A stretch of DNA of 63,382 nt, counting the filler, from Perkinsus chesapeaki ATCC PRA-425 (lineage: Eukaryota > Protista > Perkinsozoa), in assembly GCA_013115145.1 (NCBI GenBank). It is 4 parts of 4 records of this genome, joined end to end, with 100 filler letters (N's around TTAATTAATTAA, not from the genome) between each part and the next. Parts side by side here need not be neighbours in the genome. Positions count along the whole stretch, not along the records: positions 56,456 to 63,382 come from JAAPAO010001052.1; 3 more parts are not named here. One strand, written 5' to 3'. Shown here one piece after another: positions 25-63,382 of the stretch. Under the pieces are notes generated by a model. The model did not search any database and was not told the origin of the DNA. It saw only the letters and a list, made by a program, of their open reading frames with translations. Numbering within the stretch: position 1 is the first letter of the stretch; the number at the start of each line of letters is the position of its first letter. The position numbers and the translations under genes are program-made.

Positions 25-96
25 GGGTGTGTAGCTCAGTGGTAGAGCGGCTGACTGCAGATCAGCAGGTCCTGGGTTCAAATCCAGGCGCGCCCT
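25..96 (+). tRNA. tRNA-Cys (GCA)
   Basis: Full cloverleaf: acceptor GGGTGTG/CGCGCCC, D arm GCTC..GAGC, anticodon stem GCTGA/TCAGC with loop CTGCAGA, T arm GGTTCAAATCC, discriminator U. Confidence 0.97.
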
Positions 97-235: not shown

Positions 236-1107
236 GCGAAGCGGAACGGTAGCCAAGGTGTTAGACACGGTAAGGTGTAGGTGCCAATGTATGAAACTGT
301 TTCATAAAACAGCCTGTTTGATTGAAACAGGTAACCTGTTAAGTTCTTTTGAATGAGCTTGCGAAGAGACATCTTTGCGTTGATATAAGACTCATCATCC
401 TGGAAGTTTCATGTTCTTAGTCGCTGAAATGATAAAATCATAACATTTTTCCGTTTTGGACTATCAAAATCGCACACACTGTATGCCATCATGTAACACA
501 CACAACTACGCCTTTGTGTGCCAGGATAAGGTATAGTTTGTAACGCATCATGTGCGAGTCAGATAGCTTCGTGCGAGTCATCATTGACTCATGCGTGGTG
601 TTTTTTTGTCTGATCCCCTTTACCAACAATCAAAATAGGTAATCCTATATACAGGAACGAAAAATGTGTGCGCAATCAGCTGTTACTACCCGTGTTATCG
701 CGCTGTGCCTCTTTGAGTTGCATGACTAAGTCGCGAACATCTTTGTGTGTGTATCGCACTTTCGACAGTAGGGCATCTGCTAAGAGGCGCTAAGGCAAGC
801 GCTAACAACGCCTAGTTTCGAAGATGTAGGAATGCCCTACCCAGACCCCCCACGGGATGCTCAGCAGCGGAGTTGTATTAGGTGCTGTAACGAAGCCGAG
901 CGTCCCCGACTCACACCTTACTCGCGTTGGCTTCTAGAACCTGCCTTGAACGACGCGGTTCGAAGACACTTCGTCCAGGCTTGTTCTTAGGCTTTCGGCT
1001 GGGTGTACCTGAAGTGAAGCATTGCTTAGCGTCCTTCACACAATGTATGACGGTTCCGCTTGCTGCTCTTGCGCCGATTCGGTTCCGCTCTATTTTGTGC
1101 TCGGCCG

Positions 1108-4100: not shown

Positions 4101-7100
4101 GCTATAACACTGGCAACCGCTCGTAATATCTGGTCAGTAGCGTCCACAAGGCCTCCGTTGTAGTTGAACTGTAGAATATCCAGTAGCCCATGGAGACGGG
4201 TGTGGAGGATAGACAGAACTGTTGGCAAGGAACGTGTCCGGTCCAGGACCTATGACAGGAAATCGACATGCAGTGGTGAAGCTCACTGGATAGGACCGGC
4301 TTCACGGCTGCCAGCCTTCCTTGTAACTGACCTACCGAGCATAGCTTAGTAATCAACTCATCGTCGGGCTTGTGCGACGGAATCTCCGTTGTCATCAGAA
4401 CCTGGCCTGTACATCGGACCTGACAAAACCGACAATCGATTCCCGAAGGCCTATTTTTCTCTCTAAGCTGACAAGTTCATCGTTACCATGTCGGATGCTG
4501 TATCGAAGATGCGCTCTATGATTGCTTTATGTACTTGGACTAGCTCAGAAGAATTGAGGCATCCTGGAGATGTAACCGCCGCGAGGAAAATATGCCTACA
4601 GCAATATTTCCCAGGAACTATTTGGTGCGTCAGCAACGTACATACCATGTCGAAAGAGGATCTATGCCCCATTGCGCGGATTGACATCGAAGAATAACAG
4701 TCATTGCATGCAGTGAGCCGATAGAGGAACATACAGGATTCGCGAGGCAAGGCTGCTGTGTTACGAGATACCTGAGGACTTCGACATGACTGACGGGCCC
4801 TAGTTCAATGAAACTCTCAGCTACGAGTGCAACAGCAATTTACTTCACCGCTTCATTACACTGAATGTAGTCGTTTCAAGAATTCTACCAACAGACACAC
4901 ATTGTCTCGTGATCTTCTAAGCATGCGCTGCCATCACAACCGACGCATAGACTGCATCGTTACCTTATTAGCCCAAAAATATGCTGTCTTGCAATCACAG
5001 AACAATTTATGTCCGAAATAGCGGCCACCCATCGCTCAGTGCAATCCACGAGCAAGCGAATGTGTTCAGGCATGACCTAATAAGACCACATGGCCAACAC
5101 AAGTGACCCGAGTGTGTCTAGCACACAATTATAAGCGACATAGGACAGAGGTCCGCTCGAATACATTCCGACCGACCTGAAGATCAGCTTCAGATACAAC
5201 CGTTCGCAAAAGAGACTTATAGGCATGAAACGCTTTTTCCTGCACTTCGTCGACCGCCAGGAGATGCAACACTGATAAAGCTCTGACTACACATAAGCGT
5301 GATAAATGATTCAGTTTCCGTTGAGCCTAATTGAAAGGGATTGGATTCCACCGCACGAGTTCGCTCACCGCGAGCTGCTCCAGTCTATGAACTGTCCAAC
5401 TCTGCGTCTCCGGTCCGGCATCACGAGTAAGCATGACAAGGCACTCAATAGGAGATACTTGCGACGACTAAAATATTTAGCATGCGCTAGTTCGCAGTGT
5501 GCCGTCTCACCAGTCTCTTTGGTTTCGACAGGGAGTTTTCTTTCCGTGCGCTATCCAACAAAGTGGCCTTTAAAGAGGTTGACGGGGTATCGACGAGGAT
5601 GGCACGGAAGTCAGAAGTGATTATGTCGGCATTGCCCAAGGCTAGTGACCCTGCGAGGAACATTACCATACAGCACATAGAGAGCAGTCCAATTAGAGCG
5701 CCCCCGGCGCTCTAAGAAATCGAAAGGACCAGCAGCGTATCAATCTTACTTGCAACGATCCACAATCCCATAATAGCAGTGGATCGAATATCGCGGGAAG
5801 TATCATCGGCAAGAATGAGCAAACAACGGATGATGCAGTGCTGCTGTACATTGTCGATGGAGTCACAAATCATGAGGAAACGAAGGAGGCACCTATTTGC
5901 TTCTGTGCCAGACTGCGGCTGGCTGCAGTAGTGGGAGCTCTTTGGAGTGGGGTTACCTCGAACATAGGAACTTAACCGACTCGTCGCTAACTGTCCAAGC
6001 AAGCCTGGCAATCGTCTCCATACCACCCATGGTAACCTGGTCGGGAGGTAATTGGCCTACTCCACAGATCAGGCGCTGCCCTACCACGATGTCCTCAACG
6101 TGCGGATCGAAGTACATAGACGCTACCAAACTCAACGCATTCTCTCGTGTTCGTTCGCTATCGGACCAAGTCAAAGCGACCACGTCCTCGACCTGTTAGA
6201 AAGAGGCTCTCGAGTTCCAATGTGAGCAGGTTGGTTCACAAGATTAGTGGTGAACTCCTCGGTTTCAACGAGCTCCATGAAGTATCGAAATCCCTCTCGC
6301 TGGATGTCGCAATCTTGCGGAAATCCCTGATGCAAGTATCTGCCTAAAAACTCGAGACGTTCATCGAATCCAGCAAAGACCTCACCGGGTTTACCTGCTG
6401 TCATTATGCTCATACTCGGGGCCGAGGCCAGTTAACATTCCGAAGGCAAAACTCGACAACGAGTTGCTGAATACTTGTTGAGAATCCGCGCTCTCGTCAA
6501 CATCACTCAGCAGGAGCAGATCCCGGACCCAGCTCAGCGAAGAGTTGTTATAGGTCCTGTCTCCGGCATTGGCTCCCAGGAAGGCGATGGTCCACGCTGC
6601 ATGACACCGAACCTGCGCTCTCGTAGAATGACGTAACCAGAAGACATGGAACGATGGGACGGAATTGCATTTTTCCAGAGGCTGATATATGGATGAGCAG
6701 GACGGCTGTGTGAGCTACTGGGTCAATTCTTCAGGCTAGGTAAATGACAGAACACCGATTTTGGGGAAAAGCACAAACACGGATTTTAGGGGAAAGGTTT
6801 CAAATCTCAAAAAAAACTTACAGTGACAGTTGTAGATATTGCGAGCGAGTGAACTGCGTCTGCTACTCTTGAATCAACCATAGCTTTCAGATTCATAGGA
6901 TTGCTAGACAGGTTAGCAACTGCTCCTGATAGCCACAGCAGCGTCTGAAACGTGCAATTTAATGTCACGCCCTTAAGGTGTGTAAACTCGTTTTATTCGT
7001 ACTCCGTCAACTGTCTTATGGCTTTGGGCCTCAGAAAGCGCTTCTAGAACAAAGGCCAGTGCTCCCTTGTAGACTAGCATCGACTGGGCTGTTCGGTTCA

Positions 7101-56455: not shown

Positions 56456-56528
56456 GCACCTCCCAGGGTATATTGAAGTTACTAAAGCACCTCCCAGGGT
56501 ATATTGAAGTTACTAAACCACCTCCCAG
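56456..56528. repeat. 31-bp satellite, left flank of the retrotransposon
   Basis: GCACCTCCCAGGGTATATTGAAGTTACTAAA x2 plus a partial unit ending CCTCCCAG. Confidence 0.93.
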
Positions 56529-56952
56529 TAATAGGATTAACAACGAACCCAACTCGCACTTGAGCCAAGATGGCTACGTATTTGACACTTACAGAACCTC
56601 ACAGTGATAATCCAACCTAATCGCACAACTAACAGAGTTATGTCACCGCAGCTAAAAAGTGTACGCATGCGCATGTTGCGCCGCGCGCTCGTCAAGAGCG
56701 GACTATGGATCTATCAATAATCAATGAATAGCATGATAAGTAATCAAGGACAGATCAAGAGTAGATATACCACTATGGGCATCATCCCACTCAACATCAA
56801 CATGACCAGAGGCACGAACCGCGACCACTTTACCCTTATAATATCGCTTCTGCGGTCTCTTACGATTCGGCACGACAACATCATATAGGACACTCAGACG
56901 CATATCAACTAAGCTCGGAAGTATATTAGCATATGGGTCTGCAGTACTATCA
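56529..56952 (-). repeat. 3' LTR (TG...TA)
   Basis: Matches 62877-63300 with two mismatches seen by eye and directly follows the PPT. Confidence 0.95.
56559..56578 (-). other. Spliced-leader sequence copy in the 3' LTR
   Basis: CGTAGCCATCTTGGCTCAAG equals the 3' 20 nt of the Perkinsus 22-nt SL ACCGTAGCCATCTTGGCTCAAG (recalled from the literature). Confidence 0.93.
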
Positions 56953-58109
56953 CGCCCCCCTTGGCGTGGACCATCGCTCGGAGAGATTGGGGCAGAACGC
57001 CACACACGGGAAGACAAGTTAACAATCTCAGGTACATCACCATTCTTAAACTTAACCCAAACCTCACCAGAGTCGTCACAAGGATCAAAGCATATCTCAG
57101 CCTCGCGTTCATAGGAACCATAATCCAAGATAATACCCATACCTACTCGACTCACAGTAGAAAGATCAGGATCACGGTGCGAGTGAGCTCTAAGCAGAAC
57201 GATGTTGTACAAATTCTCCAAAGTAACCAAACCGGAAGGGAATCGAACACGAACTCGGCGATCCGAAACGCATTCCACAATATGACCAAGTCGGAAGGAC
57301 ATACCTAACTTTCTACCAGACATATACACCAAAACCGCATCACCGGGAGCAAACTCAGTAGGTGTAACTCCACGACTTTTAGCTCGAACAGAGGACAAAG
57401 AATACCTCTTCAATTCGCTCCAAAGCCAAGATACAAAGGAATTACGGATAGCTTTAACACGGTAAGGAAGAAAGTTAGCAAAAAATCCAGGATCATTAAG
57501 AGACTGATCAATATCCAAACAACCAAACCGACGAGTCCGACCATAACAGAGACTGTCAGGGGTAATAACATCAGAACCATTCTCACTGACATAGTAAGTT
57601 CTCAAAGGTCTAGTATTCAATAAAAGCATAAGCTCTTCTAGGAGTTGTTGCTCACGAACCGGATCATCAGGCCAGCGGCCTGCGGAGCCTCGGAGCATAA
57701 CTCTCAATCGATCTCCTGCTAGGTCATGCAGCTTCTCTGAACCTAATTCCCAAGGGGATCGACTAGCAGTAAGTTCTACGGAAGCATTGAGCATAGCGGC
57801 AGCGCGGTCTCGAAAGTTAGAGAGCGAACGGAAGTAAGATGCTCTATCACTACAAATGACCCGAACACCACCAGTGCGGAGCTGTAATAGCTTAAGCACA
57901 CGTAAAGCTTCCTCAGAATTCTCGGATTCTACTCGAAAGAAAGATATGTGCTTGGAAAAACAGCACATAGCAGATAACAATTTAACCTTATCACCAACAG
58001 CATAATAATCGATAGCAACCTTGTAGTAAGGACACTTAGCGCTCAAATCTAAGACATCAGTGCGAACAGATGGCAAGGAATTCCAACTCCGCTTAGCTCG
58101 AAGGGTCCG
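56721..58109 (-). CDS. pol: Integrase core + C-terminal SH3/Tudor-like modules (pol segment after an in-frame TGA)
   Basis: IDY, ICSDRASYF, WELGSEKLH and NTRPL integrase motifs, in frame with the upstream pol ORF across TGA 58110-12. Confidence 0.9.
   Translation of the reverse strand, partial: RTLRAKRSWNSLPSVRTDVLDLSAKCPYYKVAIDYYAVGDKVKLLSAMCCFSKHISFFRVESENSEEALRVLKLLQLRTGGVRVICSDRASYFRSLSNFRDRAAAMLNASVELTASRSPWELGSEKLHDLAGDRLRVMLRGSAGRWPDDPVREQQLLEELMLLLNTRPLRTYYVSENGSDVITPDSLCYGRTRRFGCLDIDQSLNDPGFFANFLPYRVKAIRNSFVSWLWSELKRYSLSSVRAKSRGVTPTEFAPGDAVLVYMSGRKLGMSFRLGHIVECVSDRRVRVRFPSGLVTLENLYNIVLLRAHSHRDPDLSTVSRVGMGIILDYGSYEREAEICFDPCDDSGEVWVKFKNGDVPEIVNLSSRVWRSAPISPSDGPRQGGRDSTADPYANILPSLVDMRLSVLYDVVVPNRKRPQKRYYKGKVVAVRASGHVDVEWDDAHSGISTLDLSLITYHAIH
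56953..56962 (-). other. Polypurine tract
   Basis: AAGGGGGGCG immediately 5' of the TG that starts the 3' LTR. Confidence 0.8.
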
Positions 58110-60020
58110 TCATACGACACACAATCGGAGCAAGTCTCTCATCTGACTCGTACCCGACGGCAAATGGAAGTCCTCAACATAAGACAAGGAAGGACGCAGG
58201 CCTTGATGACCACACCGGTTATGAGCATCAAGCAAGACCTTCTTACGAAGGGACACAGCGGACCGCGGCAGCACATACTGCCTGAGCTCCGTACCGAACG
58301 GAGTGCCAGTCCTAAATACCACCAATTCACCATCAGCAAGCACATAAGGACCAGAAGGCGTTACACCATCTCGAACCATCTTCAGGCATGCATCATCGTG
58401 AATCTGAGCCGAATACACTAGAGCTCGGAAATCACTCGTGTCGGGGACCAGAGGATAGACAAGGCTCTTCAAAGCATCCTCTCCGTCACGATTAGCCTTC
58501 AACAACTCAAATACGAACTTCATGCACTTGACGGTGCGGCATACCTGGGGTAGATCATAACACTGCTGGGCAATAGTCTCGGCCAACGAGGAGGACGAAC
58601 TGTCAGAAGGAACCAAGGCGAGCAGGTCCGCACAGAGATCTGGGCCAGTGTTCTCACACTCCACAGAAGAGAACAATTGGGATCGCTCCAGGGACGCCTT
58701 TGCGGCATGATCATCATACTCCTCAACTAACCAAGATAACGAATCTTCACTTTCTTCATCATCGTCATCTACAGGCCAGAGTACGGCCTCAGAGTCCACC
58801 GCGCCAGCCAAGGCTTCAGCAAGGGGGAGGTTAACTCCTACTTGACGGTCAAACAGGCGGGACAAACGGTCTGCCTCAACATTCAGCGAACCTTTCACAT
58901 GCAACACGGTGACAGTAGCATACCGGCGCAAAAACTTAATCTCATCGGAAATCGCAAGGATAAGACGACCAATCGCACGTTTTTCAATAGCTTTACTACG
59001 AGCGAACAGAACAGAAGCATCTTGTTCGGCCCACGCTATACAAGCACGATTATCCGAGCGAACCGAGATTTTCAAGCGCTCACTACAATGACGATGCTCA
59101 ACGAAGTGACTCACAAGCTTGCTCAGGGAACGTAAGCCTAATAACAAGGTCATTAGCTCTCGTCTATTCGAGTGATACAGGCGCTGTCTCTTAGACCACC
59201 GAAATGCCTCAGAACAGATTACTGGGCCCGAGGATATATCGAACTCGTCAGGCTTATCCCCGCCCCCCTCGGTGGAGGAAACGATTAAAAATCCTCCACC
59301 CGATCTCGAAGCATCACATGCCAAAATGAGAGCAGCAACAGAATCCGGCGGCAGACAGTGAGATGAGTGCGAACATTCAGATTGCTCAGTCAACTCACGC
59401 ATCCACGCCAACAGGGCCGAATAAACAGAGAACTGCAAAGGGTTCAAAGTTGTTACCAAGCTCAGCATATCAGGCCAGGCTTCCTTGCTGAATCCTTTAC
59501 CAATCAGCGCACGCATGGCATCAGCCGATGCTCGGCAATCAGGGTGGCATTTGGCCGGATCAAATCCGATTTTACCACAAACAGAATAGATCTCTGACTT
59601 AGAGGTTTCCAGCGAGTGATCCGACATGACGAATTCACGAACCGACTTCAGTCGAGCGGATCTATCACAAAGAAGCTCCAGCTTGTCCTCGGCATAGAGA
59701 AAGCTTACTCCTAGCACCGGTAGCTTATCAGATATAGCGATACCAATCGATGCCAAAAGACCACTAACAGTATCTCGAACCGAAGCACAACAGATACAGC
59801 GAAACTTCTGTAGCTGGACACCAAAGCCACAAATAAACATAGCAAATAACAGTAGCTTCACGTTCGTGATGACAGCAGTAGGAGTTCCACCAATTACGAA
59901 ATCATCCACAAACAAACTCCAGAAGCATACCATAAACAAAGAAGATACGGCGGTTACAAGTTTTCCGAACGAACTTAGTAAGGACCAAAAACTAGTCCAA
60001 AGCACATTCTCGAACTCCAA
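58110..60020 (-). CDS. pol: RT C-terminal half, RNase H and integrase zinc finger (pol segment)
   Basis: FVDD, LACDAS, NRRELMTLL, VRSDN, HVKGSLNVEADRLSR and H..CGH.G...CVV*. Confidence 0.92.
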   Translation of the reverse strand: MEFENVLWTSFWSLLSSFGKLVTAVSSLFMVCFWSLFVDDFVIGGTPTAVITNVKLLLFAMFICGFGVQLQKFRCICCASVRDTVSGLLASIGIAISDKLPVLGVSFLYAEDKLELLCDRSARLKSVREFVMSDHSLETSKSEIYSVCGKIGFDPAKCHPDCRASADAMRALIGKGFSKEAWPDMLSLVTTLNPLQFSVYSALLAWMRELTEQSECSHSSHCLPPDSVAALILACDASRSGGGFLIVSSTEGGGDKPDEFDISSGPVICSEAFRWSKRQRLYHSNRRELMTLLLGLRSLSKLVSHFVEHRHCSERLKISVRSDNRACIAWAEQDASVLFARSKAIEKRAIGRLILAISDEIKFLRRYATVTVLHVKGSLNVEADRLSRLFDRQVGVNLPLAEALAGAVDSEAVLWPVDDDDEESEDSLSWLVEEYDDHAAKASLERSQLFSSVECENTGPDLCADLLALVPSDSSSSSLAETIAQQCYDLPQVCRTVKCMKFVFELLKANRDGEDALKSLVYPLVPDTSDFRALVYSAQIHDDACLKMVRDGVTPSGPYVLADGELVVFRTGTPFGTELRQYVLPRSAVSLRKKVLLDAHNRCGHQGLRPSLSYVEDFHLPSGTSQMRDLLRLCVV

Positions 60021-61345
60021 TACAGAAGGGTGGCAGCTCCCATCTGCAAGATAAAGTTCGCCAGGCGCACTCGGTAGAATGCTTGTTTGGCATCAACCGT
60101 AGATAAGACGGGCGGGGACTGCCATCGGATGCATCCTATAACCACTGAGGCATCTGGGGACTCACTGCTTGCTTTGGGAAACCCACGGTTGACCTCTCTG
60201 CAGTCCAGAACAAGCCGCGGCTTCCTATTGGAAGCTGGACCGACCATGAACACTGGAATGGTAGGGGATAAGAGGGTCTCATTAGGAGTTTCAAGTGGGG
60301 CTTGAACCCACCACGAACGCTTCACATAGTCTTCAACTAGCTCTGTGTAGGCCTCACGCTGTGCTGGAGGAAGTCGATCATACAGAGCCCGAGCATAATT
60401 ACGGGTCTGATTGATGGACTTGCTGTCGAAGCCAGAACAATTGATCTCGAAAGTAAAGCACTGTTGGAGAGTATCACGAACCTCAACCGGAAGCAGCTTA
60501 CGAAGGCGGACAGATAGACGATCACCAGGACATTTCAACAACGGGGCCCAACCTTGATTACATAGGGCATTTAAAACGTCCATCACATGGCTAATAGACT
60601 CGGCCTCCAACGGGATAGGAAAACCAGGGTCAACGGACTCGTCACAAACCGGCTGCGAACAAACGCCAGGAAGGCTCAAATCGGGAGGTACAAACTCTTC
60701 GGCCAAAGCTCGAACGGTAGCAGGGTCATCAACCAAAGGGTGAGTGGCGCCATTCACAGTGCAGTTATACACACATACGCCACGAACCGCTACATATGAT
60801 GATCCACGGATTTCTATCTGCCAATGAGATAACAGATTTCTACCAGCGAGCACACACCAAGAGGAAGAGTCTCTCCAAAAAGGCTTAACTCTCAGAATAC
60901 GAAGTCTGATACGAACTTCACCGATAGCATTACATTCGCCAAGGTCAACCGGGAACAACCCCAGAATAGTTTCAACCACAGCTGACACTTCTCGTTGCGA
61001 ACCATCGGCCAACTTAACGATACCACCATCAGACTCACAGTTGAGGAACGGGGAACCAGGACCACAGTAGAGGTCATAAGCGTGTGACAGTAACAAATAG
61101 CTTAAACCAGCTCCAGAATCAAGGAACACCGATGTTGGGCTAAAACAATGCTCATCCACTGGAGAGCGCACTTGCCCAGCGATCATAATTTCAGGGGGAT
61201 GACCTTTTACATCCACAATACAAATAGAATCAGAGAAAGTCAATGGTTCAAAGCGAATCATATCAGATGAAAGTGAGACATCAGAAACAGAAGGAAGTTG
61301 GTCGACGCGAAGAATCGCCTCACTATGTTCTTCGGCCGACCTCAT
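59975..61345 (-). CDS. pol: Aspartic protease and RT N-terminal half (pol segment)
   Basis: VFLDSGA, AGRNLL, RLVLDCREVN, STVDAKQAFY and RMCFGL. Confidence 0.92.
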   Translation of the reverse strand: MRSAEEHSEAILRVDQLPSVSDVSLSSDMIRFEPLTFSDSICIVDVKGHPPEIMIAGQVRSPVDEHCFSPTSVFLDSGAGLSYLLLSHAYDLYCGPGSPFLNCESDGGIVKLADGSQREVSAVVETILGLFPVDLGECNAIGEVRIRLRILRVKPFWRDSSSWCVLAGRNLLSHWQIEIRGSSYVAVRGVCVYNCTVNGATHPLVDDPATVRALAEEFVPPDLSLPGVCSQPVCDESVDPGFPIPLEAESISHVMDVLNALCNQGWAPLLKCPGDRLSVRLRKLLPVEVRDTLQQCFTFEINCSGFDSKSINQTRNYARALYDRLPPAQREAYTELVEDYVKRSWWVQAPLETPNETLLSPTIPVFMVGPASNRKPRLVLDCREVNRGFPKASSESPDASVVIGCIRWQSPPVLSTVDAKQAFYRVRLANFILQMGAATLLYWSSRMCFGLVFGPY

Positions 61346-61354
61346 TAGTTTCCC
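61300..61354 (-). promoter_or_regulatory. Candidate -1 ribosomal frameshift signal (G_GGA_AAC + 6-nt spacer + hairpin)
   Basis: Slippery heptamer in the gag frame just before its stop. Downstream GGTCG-GC-CGAAGAA pairs with TTCTTCG-CGT-CGACC, and pol is in the -1 frame. Confidence 0.82.
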
Positions 61355-62877
61355 GGCTCCTGAGGCGCGCCTGCTCCTGATGCGGCAAGCCGTCCTCTAA
61401 ACTGGAAAGGTCTCACTTGGAACTGGTCACTATGAAGATCTCTCACAGCATCAGTTCCCTCGACTTTATTACGATAAGCTAAGAACCATAACTGTCCGTT
61501 ACCAGAACGCAAGGGCACAACCCGAGACTCGTCAGCACGAACGACCTGATCGGGTTGGCCTTGAACACCAGGACCACCAATGACATACACCACGGCGAAC
61601 TTGGATGCCCACTTGGAGAGGCTTTCTCTTCGGTGCTTTGGTGCGGCATCCCGAACCTGGGAGACAACATCCGAAGCAGCACGCATGTGCAGGGTACGCG
61701 TGCCATCCCTCTCCGAGGACTTTCCGCCACTGGGCTGGGTAGTAAGTCGAATAGAGGCATCACGGAAGATCCGGCAACTCTTCCTTATACAGCCAACAAC
61801 CGTAGGTCCCACAAGGACACCATCGAAAGGCAATAGTAGCTCCCATTCAGTGTCCTCGGACATCTCGCGCTCCACATCACGTGACATACCCGAACTCGAG
61901 TAGATGGATTCAATAACATCCAGTCGTAGGTTCTCAGGCAGCTTGTTAATAACCGCACGAACCATTATCCGTCGTTCGAAAGTCTCATCCTTGTACACAT
62001 CCTGATAGAGATGAAATAATGCCGAACATTTGCGCAAGAAGGCATCTGCTCCATTAAGGTCAGCAAACCTCAGAGCACTAAGGGCTGAGCGGTATCCATC
62101 CCTTAGCTGGTCCTTGCGAGAGAATTGTTGTCGGAGTTCCTCCCTTATAGCCTGCCAACTGTAGTTAGTCGTTCTAGCAACCTCGTGCGCGGCAGCCAAA
62201 GCCTCAGGGCACGGCTTGAGGCTAGTCGCTAGCTTGGTGAAGCAAGTCAGCTTGAACTTGGAGTACGGGACAAAGTAGCCTGACATAGAATGACCGGCTC
62301 CTGCTTCCTCGAACAAGCTTTCAACCAAGATGAGGTGAGAGGCAACATGTGGAGCCGACTGCACCTCAGGCACTGGCACTCGATTGAGGTCAGCTAGAGT
62401 AGTAGTGGGCCTCACGGGAACCCTCGACCCAGGATCCTCAGGATCTTCGGCATTACTCGGACTCAAACTCATGTACTGGACCGATTGGTGAGGGGATACT
62501 CTAGGTTCGGTGTTCTGTTGGACTGAACCTGATACGTGCTCCCCAAGGACACCAAGTGCTCGAGTTGCCCTCGAAAGACCTGCTTGGCGAGACCGATCGC
62601 TGTGGCTGGCGTCCAGAGTAGCCTGCGCCTCAACGATGTCGGTCTCGAGTTCGGCTATCCTAGCGAGCGAAGTAGCTTCTCGCTCGTGTAACTCCTCCAG
62701 GACCGGCAGGTAATCTTCCGAACCGTCATCAATCAAATTATTAAGAGATTCACGGGCTTGGGCAAGAGAACGGCGAACGGATGCAAGTTCTCGACGGAGC
62801 CCTCGTAAATCAACAGGCGGGGCGGAAGTAGCTGCTGCTGTAGAAGGGATAGGAGGAGATCCCACAGGTGTCGCCAT
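61345..62877 (-). CDS. gag: Gag-like protein (510 aa from ATG 62877)
   Basis: Intact ORF upstream of pol with an N-terminal coiled coil and a gag-like helical WQAIREELRQQF region. No CCHC knuckle seen. Confidence 0.85.
   Translation of the reverse strand: MATPVGSPPIPSTAAATSAPPVDLRGLRRELASVRRSLAQARESLNNLIDDGSEDYLPVLEELHEREATSLARIAELETDIVEAQATLDASHSDRSRQAGLSRATRALGVLGEHVSGSVQQNTEPRVSPHQSVQYMSLSPSNAEDPEDPGSRVPVRPTTTLADLNRVPVPEVQSAPHVASHLILVESLFEEAGAGHSMSGYFVPYSKFKLTCFTKLATSLKPCPEALAAAHEVARTTNYSWQAIREELRQQFSRKDQLRDGYRSALSALRFADLNGADAFLRKCSALFHLYQDVYKDETFERRIMVRAVINKLPENLRLDVIESIYSSSGMSRDVEREMSEDTEWELLLPFDGVLVGPTVVGCIRKSCRIFRDASIRLTTQPSGGKSSERDGTRTLHMRAASDVVSQVRDAAPKHRRESLSKWASKFAVVYVIGGPGVQGQPDQVVRADESRVVPLRSGNGQLWFLAYRNKVEGTDAVRDLHSDQFQVRPFQFRGRLAASGAGAPQEPGN
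62859..62876 (-). other. Primer-binding site (18 nt), tRNA with G discriminator, possibly Ser(GCU) or Arg
   Basis: TGGCGACACCTGTGGGAT directly after the 5' LTR. Its complement AUCCCAC-AGGUGUC-G-CCA fits tRNA positions 59-76. Confidence 0.88.
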
Positions 62878-63300
62878 AATAGGATTAACAACGAACCCAA
62901 CTCGCACTTGAGCCAAGATGGCTACGTATTTGACACTTACAGAACCTCACAGTGATAATCCAACCTAATCGCACAACTAACAGAGTTATGTCACCGCAGC
63001 TAAAAAGTGTACGCATGCGCATGTTGCGCCGCGCGCTCGTCAAGAGCGGACTATGGATCTATCAATAATCAATGAATAGCATGATAAGTAATCAAGGACA
63101 GATCAAGAGTAGATATACCACTATGGGCATCATCCCACTCAACATCAACATGACCAGAGGCACGAACCGCGACCACTTTACCCTTATAATATCGCTTCTG
63201 CGGTCTCTTACGATTCGGCACGACAACATCATATAGGACACTCAGACGCATACCAACTAAGCTCGGAAGTATATTAGCATATGGGTCTGCAGTACTGTCA
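62877..63300 (-). repeat. 5' LTR (TG...TA)
   Basis: 424-bp direct repeat of 56529-56952, followed by the PBS. Confidence 0.95.
62907..62926 (-). other. Spliced-leader sequence copy in the 5' LTR
   Basis: CGTAGCCATCTTGGCTCAAG in sense orientation, 29 nt upstream of the gag ATG. Confidence 0.93.
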
Positions 63301-63382
63301 CAGGGTATGTTGAAGTTACTAAAGCACCTCCCAGGGTATATTGAAGTTACTAAAGCACCTCCCAGGGTATATTGAAGTTCCT
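63301..63382. repeat. 31-bp satellite, right flank of the retrotransposon
   Basis: Resumes at CAGGGTATGTTGAAG... and continues as GCACCTCCCAGGGTATATTGAAGTTACTAAA units to the window end. Confidence 0.93.

Follow-up and report, generated by a model that had tools for sequence, protein, structure and literature searches.

A host spliced-leader sequence in the long terminal repeats of divergent Ty3-like retrotransposons of Perkinsus chesapeaki: a candidate terminal repeat for trans-spliced element RNA

We analysed a stretch of 63,382 nucleotides of DNA, filler included, from Perkinsus chesapeaki ATCC PRA-425 (GenBank assembly GCA_013115145.1), referred to here as the window. Positions 56456-63382 represent an entire 6,927-bp contig (JAAPAO010001052.1) holding one long terminal repeat (LTR) retrotransposon of the Ty3-like type, located on the minus strand and inserted in a 31-bp satellite (Tandem Repeats Finder, period 31). 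The element has the features expected of an LTR element, that is, long direct terminal repeats, a target-site duplication, and gag followed by protease (PR), reverse transcriptase (RT), RNase H (RH) and integrase (IN) in that order (Table 1). Its two LTRs are identical at 422 of 424 positions, with 2 mismatches, and CTG is present on either side of the element, the duplication restoring the 31-bp satellite unit. The sequence CGTAGCCATCTTGGCTCAAG was found at exactly two places in the window. Each LTR has one copy, in the sense orientation of the element (minus strand). This 20-mer corresponds to nucleotides 3-22 of the L-type spliced leader (SL) of Perkinsus, known from P. marinus as ACCGTAGCCATCTTGGCTCAAG (PMC9399869; PMC3101222). 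The PmaSL-La/s probe, by which the SL RNA of P. chesapeaki was visualized on blots, is exactly complementary to the 20-mer (PMC3101222). No chance match to the SL appeared in 100 shuffles. On the sense strand, the SL copy is followed by TGCG; exactly 29 nt separate it from the gag ATG, and a 30-nt tail separates it from the end of the LTR. The first-pass annotation, which was made from the sequence alone, had described a sense-strand SL in both LTRs just upstream of U5, the primer binding site (PBS) and the gag ATG, had given the sequence of the Perkinsus SL, and had noted that TGCG follows the SL copy, with no SL RNA intron; the anatomy agrees with our results, the leader given is the published one, and the third point excludes an SL RNA gene. 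Since a single cDNA gives rise to both LTRs of a new insertion, the two SL copies represent one independent occurrence.

Table 1. Features of the retrotransposon in the window, followed by the gag ATG junctions and LTRs of related families (positions of window features count along the window; ORF, open reading frame)
Feature	Position	Strand	Basis or remark
Flanking 31-bp satellite, upstream in element sense	63301-63382	.	Includes target-site duplication CTG (63303-63301); Tandem Repeats Finder
5' LTR, 424 bp, TGACAG...CCTATTA	62877-63300	-	Direct repeat with 56529-56952
SL copy in 5' LTR	62907-62926	-	Identical to nt 3-22 of the Perkinsus L-type SL; TA before it (62928-62927), AC in the SL
Candidate U5, GT-rich 30-nt LTR tail TGCGAGTTGGGTTCGTTGTTAATCCTATTA	62877-62906	-	Sequence; putative role
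PBS	62859-62876	-	Putative; immediately after the LTR; inside gag coding sequence (M-A-T-P)
gag ORF, 510 aa + stop	61345-62877	-	Weak homology to gag of related elements
Heptamer G GGA AAC, candidate -1 frameshift site into pol	61348-61354	-	Just before the gag stop; putative function
pol part 1: protease (LDSGAG) and N-terminal half of RT	59978-61396	-	Terminated by a frame change within RT; matches caulimovirus, Ty3 and HIV RT by profile
pol part 2: C-terminal half of RT (FVDD), RNase H (DAS), integrase zinc-binding region	58113-60092	-	Motifs
In-frame TGA within the integrase zinc-binding region	58110-58112	-	Sequence
pol part 3: integrase core and C-terminal Tudor-like domain	56721-58109	-	ORF enters the 3' LTR by 229 nt
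Polypurine tract AAGGGGGG, then CG	56953-56962	-	Adjoins the 3' LTR upstream; sequence
3' LTR, 424 bp	56529-56952	-	Direct repeat with the 5' LTR
SL copy in 3' LTR	56559-56578	-	Exact match; identical to the copy in the 5' LTR
Flanking 31-bp satellite, downstream in element sense	56456-56528	.	Includes target-site duplication CTG (56528-56526)
LTR/PBS gag ATG junction, window element	62866-62877	-	
LTR/PBS gag ATG junction, L112 (P. chesapeaki)	897-910		
LTR/PBS gag ATG junction, L113 (P. chesapeaki)	~10000		LTR 168 nt, without SL
LTR/PBS gag ATG junction, L116 (environmental contig)	427-439		LTR 110 nt, without SL
LTR/PBS gag ATG junction, L119 (P. marinus)	6766-6777		LTR 243 nt, without SL
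LTR/PBS gag ATG junction, L118 (family L118/L120, P. marinus)	30-33		LTR 202 nt, without SL
LTR of L192 (P. olseni)			LTR ~306 nt, without SL

Through an integrase search we reached a second, diverged P. chesapeaki family, L112, located in contig JAAPAO010001004.1. Its amino-acid identity with the window element is ~47% in the ORF containing the integrase and the C-terminus, 32-37% in gag and 37% in PR-RT. Both LTRs of L112, which have 3 mismatches to each other, hold TCCGTAGCCATCTTGGCTCAAG (21 of the 22 nt of the SL), 48 nt before the LTR end ...AAACA. The LTR end is followed by TGGCGACACCT, and the gag ATG spans the junction as it does in the window element, where this codon (62877-62875) joins the final A of the LTR to TG from the PBS. 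The first-pass annotation had named the presence of the SL in the window copy alone as one result that would speak against its proposal, and in L112 the SL is found again at the equivalent place. The longest string common to the LTRs of the two families is the 20-nt SL itself, while shuffled sequences shared at most 12 nt, and the next, of 11 nt, lies at the pol stop. Neither the U5 tails nor the 100 nt that precede the SL align better between the two families than shuffled sequence, and in L112 the SL is followed by ATCT. Apart from the pol-coding part, the two LTRs have nothing in common beyond chance except the SL. Mismatches with the authentic leader are confined to positions 1-2, where the SL has AC, the window element TA and L112 TC; in both families ATAC lies directly before, or overlaps, the start of the SL (AAATACGTAG and CTATACTCCGTAG). 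Four Perkinsus-type SL copies were present in the ~100 kb of Perkinsus DNA that we fetched, all of them in the LTRs of these two elements.

A connection with P. marinus emerged from published primers. More than 100 intron-less SL copies, "most starting with T" and not expressed as SL RNA, were reported in this species by Zhang et al. 2011 (PMC3101222), who did not connect these SL-like loci with LTRs or retrotransposons. Like L112, these orphan loci have an SL exon without the SL intron, and the type called 'L1-like' continues with ATCTTAGT. The primers for the L1-like loci read SL+ATCTTAGTG, ...CCATCTTGGCTCAAGATCTTAGTGTCG (PMC3101222), and L112 reads SL+ATCTTAGTT, ...CTCAAGATCTTAGTTGCG, the 8 nt after the SL being the same in both. 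The SL-U5 junction is therefore shared across the two species. From the primers and L112, and not from P. marinus contigs, we consider that the SL is probably also located in LTRs behind the L1-like loci of P. marinus. Taken with the anatomy of the two P. chesapeaki elements, this suggests that in some members of the lineage the SL copy has become an integral component of the LTR, at the position of R, between U3 and a short GT-rich U5.

The lineage to which these elements belong is Perkinsus-specific and very divergent among Ty3-like retrotransposons. In the window element, motifs follow the order LDSGAG, FVDD, DAS, HHCC and integrase core, in a pol frame (-1 relative to gag) that is open from 61396. 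Pfam matches on this pol were limited to rve, Integrase_H2C2 and RT_RNaseH_2, all under the gathering score; RVT_1 gave no match, and neither RVT_1 nor rve was found above the curated cut-off. A family profile built from nine related pol proteins and compared with solved structures (PDB) matched the RT of caulimovirus (6e-13), the Ty3 Gag-Pol and the foamy-virus integrase. An exhaustive search of 1.8 billion representatives with the integrase piece returned just 89 relatives; Perkinsus proteins were the majority of the top integrase matches looked up, and FOL47_000356 of P. chesapeaki was the sole near-identical database protein. Protein word searches with gag and with the PR-RT piece gave no matches. 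The C-terminus of pol is encoded in the LTR (56724-56952, repeated at 63072-63300 in the U3 of the other LTR) and resembles the Pfam Tudor_5, Tudor_3 or Agenet repeat units; L119 and L192 likewise have a pol C-terminus encoded in the LTR. The integrase thus carries a Tudor-like reader domain encoded inside the LTR, analogous to the chromodomains of chromoviruses.

The related elements share a G6 polypurine tract, an LTR of the form TG...A, the PBS TGGCGACACCT (TGGTAACAGCT in L118/L120) and the ATG at the junction. The PBS core TGGCGACACCT, at 62876-62866 in the window, is common to five related families, and no tRNA gene matching the PBS was found among the fetched loci. The polypurine tract reads GGGGGGCG in the window element, L112, L113, L115, L119 and L120, and GGGGGGCCG in L116. 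The integrase tree unites the window element with L001, L112 and L119 in one clade (support 100/99). The closest relative of the window element is L001 of P. marinus, whose contig ends inside the integrase, leaving the LTR outside; in L120 the 5' LTR falls in an N gap. Several other traits of these elements were observed. The 5' LTR junction was examined in six related families; in each, the gag ATG combines the terminal A of the LTR with TG from the PBS, so that the PBS is translated (M-A-T-P..., or M-V-T-A in L118) and the entire 5' untranslated region lies within the LTR. LTR elements usually have target-site duplications of 4-6 bp; those of the window element, L112, L113 and L116 are apparently just 3 bp (CTG, GTC, GGG, CGT). 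The LTRs of L116 (318-427 and 6328-6437) and L113 (9837-10004) are extremely short, and such LTRs leave little room for promoter, R and U5, which raises the question of how the RNA ends are defined. In addition, L114, a P. chesapeaki gag-integrase remnant without LTRs, begins 16 nt after a tRNA-like 3' end (GGTTCGAATCCCACCCGGTGCCA) at positions 1-60.

To our knowledge, the survival of LTR elements in hosts with pervasive trans-splicing is largely unexplored. SL trans-splicing strips the 5' end of the primary transcript, which an LTR element needs for first-strand transfer. That this is a problem for ordinary LTR elements fits what is known of Cer1 of Caenorhabditis elegans, whose full-length genomic RNA is the form without SL1 trans-splicing (PMC3315495). 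The location of the SL at the position of R suggests that the elements of these two P. chesapeaki families are adapted to trans-splicing. Anatomy, recurrence in a second family and absence from sister families are what we observed; each RNA step set out below is a proposal. We favour, at somewhat less than even confidence, the reading in which the SL acts as R for an SL-capped element RNA. We hold a little more tentatively its complete form, in which the host SL would be the terminal repeat itself, the 5' R being added in trans in each cycle and the genomic SL copy of the 3' LTR serving as the landing site.

In molecular terms, the host SL would be trans-spliced onto the element RNA at, or beside, the AG that ends the genomic SL copy. 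Trans-splicing at this terminal AG would generate an RNA with ACCGUAGCC... joined to UGCGAGUUGGG, and the poly(A) site in the 3' LTR would be located at or after the SL copy. Minus-strand strong-stop DNA primed at the PBS would then terminate with an SL complement, which could pair with the SL copy close to the RNA 3' end, so that an SL-capped RNA would stay competent for first-strand transfer. The arrangement probably originated when a trans-spliced element RNA was reverse transcribed with irregular strand transfer; after this capture, nt 3-22 would be re-copied from the authentic host SL in each cycle. Such re-copying would be the reason why nt 3-22 are perfect in two diverged families in which positions 1-2 and the flanks differ, and the mismatches would be restricted to positions 1-2 because the trans-spliced RNA would supply these two positions itself. 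An SL acting as R also explains the SL-U5 junction common with P. marinus. Judging from their composition, the GT-rich tails that follow the SL in both families may suit a poly(A) downstream element at the R/U5 border. The mechanism is plausible and specific, and it is unproven; the observation behind it is real and recurs in a second family. In the two 5-Mb RNA sequencing runs searched, no read matched positions 57400-63382 of the window, a negative that is no sign of a silent element.

Several results weigh against the SL having this role. No SL-like sequence is present in the complete LTRs of five related families (L113, L116, L119, L118/L120 and L192), nor in the first ~155 nt, the part seen, of the LTR of L115 from P. 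olseni. When degenerate SL copies were sought in the LTRs without SL, the best local matches were no better than shuffled sequence. The lineage therefore does not need the SL, given that five related families do without it. The LTR of L192 from P. olseni, which lacks the SL, is clearly homologous to the window LTR in its 5' coding part; the non-coding tails of the window LTR and L192, and those of L112 and L119, showed no alignment above chance. Moreover, the integrase tree places L112, which bears the SL, as sister to L119 of P. marinus, which does not (support 100/97), and for this reason the distribution of the SL needs at least two events, either gains or losses. The window copy is also broken twice, by the frame change in RT (between 60092 and 59978) and by the in-frame TGA in the integrase, and is consequently defective. 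Finally, each family could be a one-off, since a single capture event puts the SL in both LTRs. As to a fixed LTR position of the SL, which the first-pass annotation had suggested looking for, the SL is present in the window element and in L112, and probably in the P. marinus L1-like loci, and absent from the five related families and from the ~155 nt of L115.

The possibility of a one-off capture leads to a reading that we regard as unlikely but serious, in which the SL is an inert relic: a trans-spliced element RNA would have been reverse transcribed once, or once per family, with irregular first-strand transfer, and the SL would have no role since then, its perfect sequence reflecting only the youth of the insertions. 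SL relics of reverse-transcribed mRNAs are common in dinozoan genomes, and our metagenome scan, described below, returned 71 contigs with this SL variant. One event suffices to explain the SL in both LTRs; the LTRs are indeed young, with 2 differences in 424 positions in the window element and 3 mismatches in L112, and the close relatives without SL and the defective window copy are in line with an SL that does nothing. This reading accounts poorly for two diverged families that carry the SL at the same functional place with flanks that cannot be aligned. The SL-ATCTTAGT junction, common to L112 of P. chesapeaki and the P. marinus loci, also argues that the arrangement of SL and LTR was propagated and not left behind once, and the capture of a 20-nt non-homologous 3' tail during strand transfer would itself be rare.

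Rather more doubtful is a third reading, in which transcription begins at the SL copy or 1-3 nt before it, so that the RNA looks trans-spliced and R starts at the SL. The 5' ends of the element RNA may then read (U)ACGUAGCC, and the SL may also work as an initiator or internal promoter element, a function reported for the SL RNA genes of other organisms. The ATAC found at the SL start in both families would suit this idea, as a start at the A would give an RNA with 5' AC, like the real SL, and the giant-virus contigs with a hard-coded, full 22-nt dinoflagellate SL, described below, offer a natural precedent. However, a cap-proximal mimic should match best at its first nucleotides, and these are precisely the ones that differ (TA and TC versus AC). 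Unless the SL were re-copied, a perfect match at nt 3-22 would also require strong selection on those nucleotides that probably contribute least to cap recognition, and the element, being transcribed in the nucleus, has real trans-splicing at hand.

For readings that we have not thought of, we reserve a probability that is smaller again. It is scarcely credible that the SL copies are a chance match, an assembly chimera or a real SL RNA gene, as zero chance matches are expected, two contigs show well-bounded LTRs, PBS, polypurine tract and target-site duplication, and the SL is followed by TGCG or ATCT and not by a GT donor and a GTAGATATCAGG intron. Regarding the candidates that we rejected, an SL RNA gene was ruled out by the lack of a GT donor or intron after the SL in both elements (the introns of Perkinsus SL RNA genes begin with GTAGATATCAGG or GTAAATATCAG; PMC3101222), and a contig chimera by the same architecture in two separate contigs. 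An SL relic of a retroposed host mRNA outside any transposon does not correspond to the locus either, where each LTR of a gag-pol element contains the SL.

We also scanned sequences outside this lineage for the SL. A scan of viral contigs (IMG/VR) with the SL, allowing C or T at position 12, returned 110 loci (L002-L111), all with the dinoflagellate TTTT type, and none of these loci contained a relative of the window element. AT-rich contigs of giant-virus metagenome-assembled genomes (median ~20% GC) carried the full 22-nt dinoflagellate SL, with 148 matches in the 110 contigs; the bins were mostly GVMAG-M-3300023179-82, -2, 3300023174-43/-52 and GVMAG-S-3300013131-116. Where the flank was long enough, ACC preceded GTAGCC in 124 of 134 matches, and a conserved AT-rich block such as TTTATTTTTAAATATAAATTTT preceded the SL, likewise in 124 of 134. 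The median distance from the SL to a following ATG was 46 nt, and in 77% of those cases an ORF of 100 aa or more came next. From these sequence patterns, dinoflagellate viruses appear to have the host SL written into the 5' end of many of their genes; no published account of this was found in our literature search. Six IMG/VR contigs of 3-6 kb (L045, L059, L065, L073, L074 and L093) contained two large ORFs (~800-900 aa and ~400 aa), with the dinoflagellate SL at the contig end or between the ORFs, and in L065 the SL was present twice, 3,846 nt apart, with identical upstream sequence. These contigs resemble transcripts of dinoflagellate positive-strand single-stranded RNA viruses or of endogenous viral elements.

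The metagenome scan (JGI/ENA) with the Perkinsus-type 19-mer returned 71 contigs (L121-L191) from unknown GC-rich dinozoans, most of them with a short leader and an ATG after the SL. They carried the TCTT variant of the SL, thought to be typical of Perkinsus, usually as TCCGTAGCCATCTTGGCTCAAG before ordinary genes, and many came from Ga0194xxx lake samples. None of the 71 contigs showed homology to the window pol, and no retroelement domain was detected in any of nine long ORFs downstream of the SL. Three contigs with GT after the SL (L122, L129 and L175) may, from this sequence, be SL RNA genes.

If the SL does act as R, its presence at this place in the LTR would be a simple solution to the loss of the RNA 5' end by trans-splicing, and any evolutionary change in the host SL would be matched by the R of the element. 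No earlier retroelement would then be known in which part of the terminal redundancy is supplied in trans. It would also give an origin to the more than 100 orphan SL-like loci of P. marinus reported in 2011, provide, next to the giant-virus contigs, an example of SL use on the parasite side, and point to compact, naturally SL-linked expression signals for transfection work in Perkinsus.

A full-text literature search, whose coverage left out most subscription journals, returned no prior description of an SL inside an LTR, and the known systems resemble the window element in part. The non-LTR elements SLACS, CRE1, CZAR and NeSL-1 of trypanosomatids and nematodes insert into SL RNA genes and carry no SL. 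They are likewise tied to the host SL, whereas the window element carries the SL in its LTR and sits in a satellite. SL relics of retroposed mRNAs have been described in dinoflagellates (Slamovits and Keeling 2008, as cited in PMC3101222 and PMC6050394). These relics share with the window element a genomic sense SL shortly upstream of a start codon, most likely derived from a reverse-transcribed trans-spliced RNA. In contrast to the relics, the window element has the SL in both LTRs of an autonomous-type retroelement and not 5' of a processed host gene, has no tandem truncated relics, and holds the SL where the replication of the element could use it. Cer1 is also a Ty3-like element in a host with SL trans-splicing, but SL1 is found only on its subgenomic spliced RNA, the 8-kb genomic RNA is not trans-spliced, and its LTR lacks the SL (PMC3315495). 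With the Ty3/gypsy-type elements in general (Metaviridae-like, including chromoviruses), the window element shares the LTRs, a putative PBS by the 5' LTR, a polypurine tract before the 3' LTR and a target-site duplication, the order gag, protease, RT, RNase H and integrase, a candidate -1 frameshift at the gag stop, and a chromatin-reader-like domain at the integrase C-terminus. It differs from them in its sub-threshold Pfam matches, the 3-bp target-site duplication, the gag ATG across the LTR/PBS junction, a reader domain that is Tudor-like instead of a chromodomain and is encoded by the LTR, and the host SL at the position of R.

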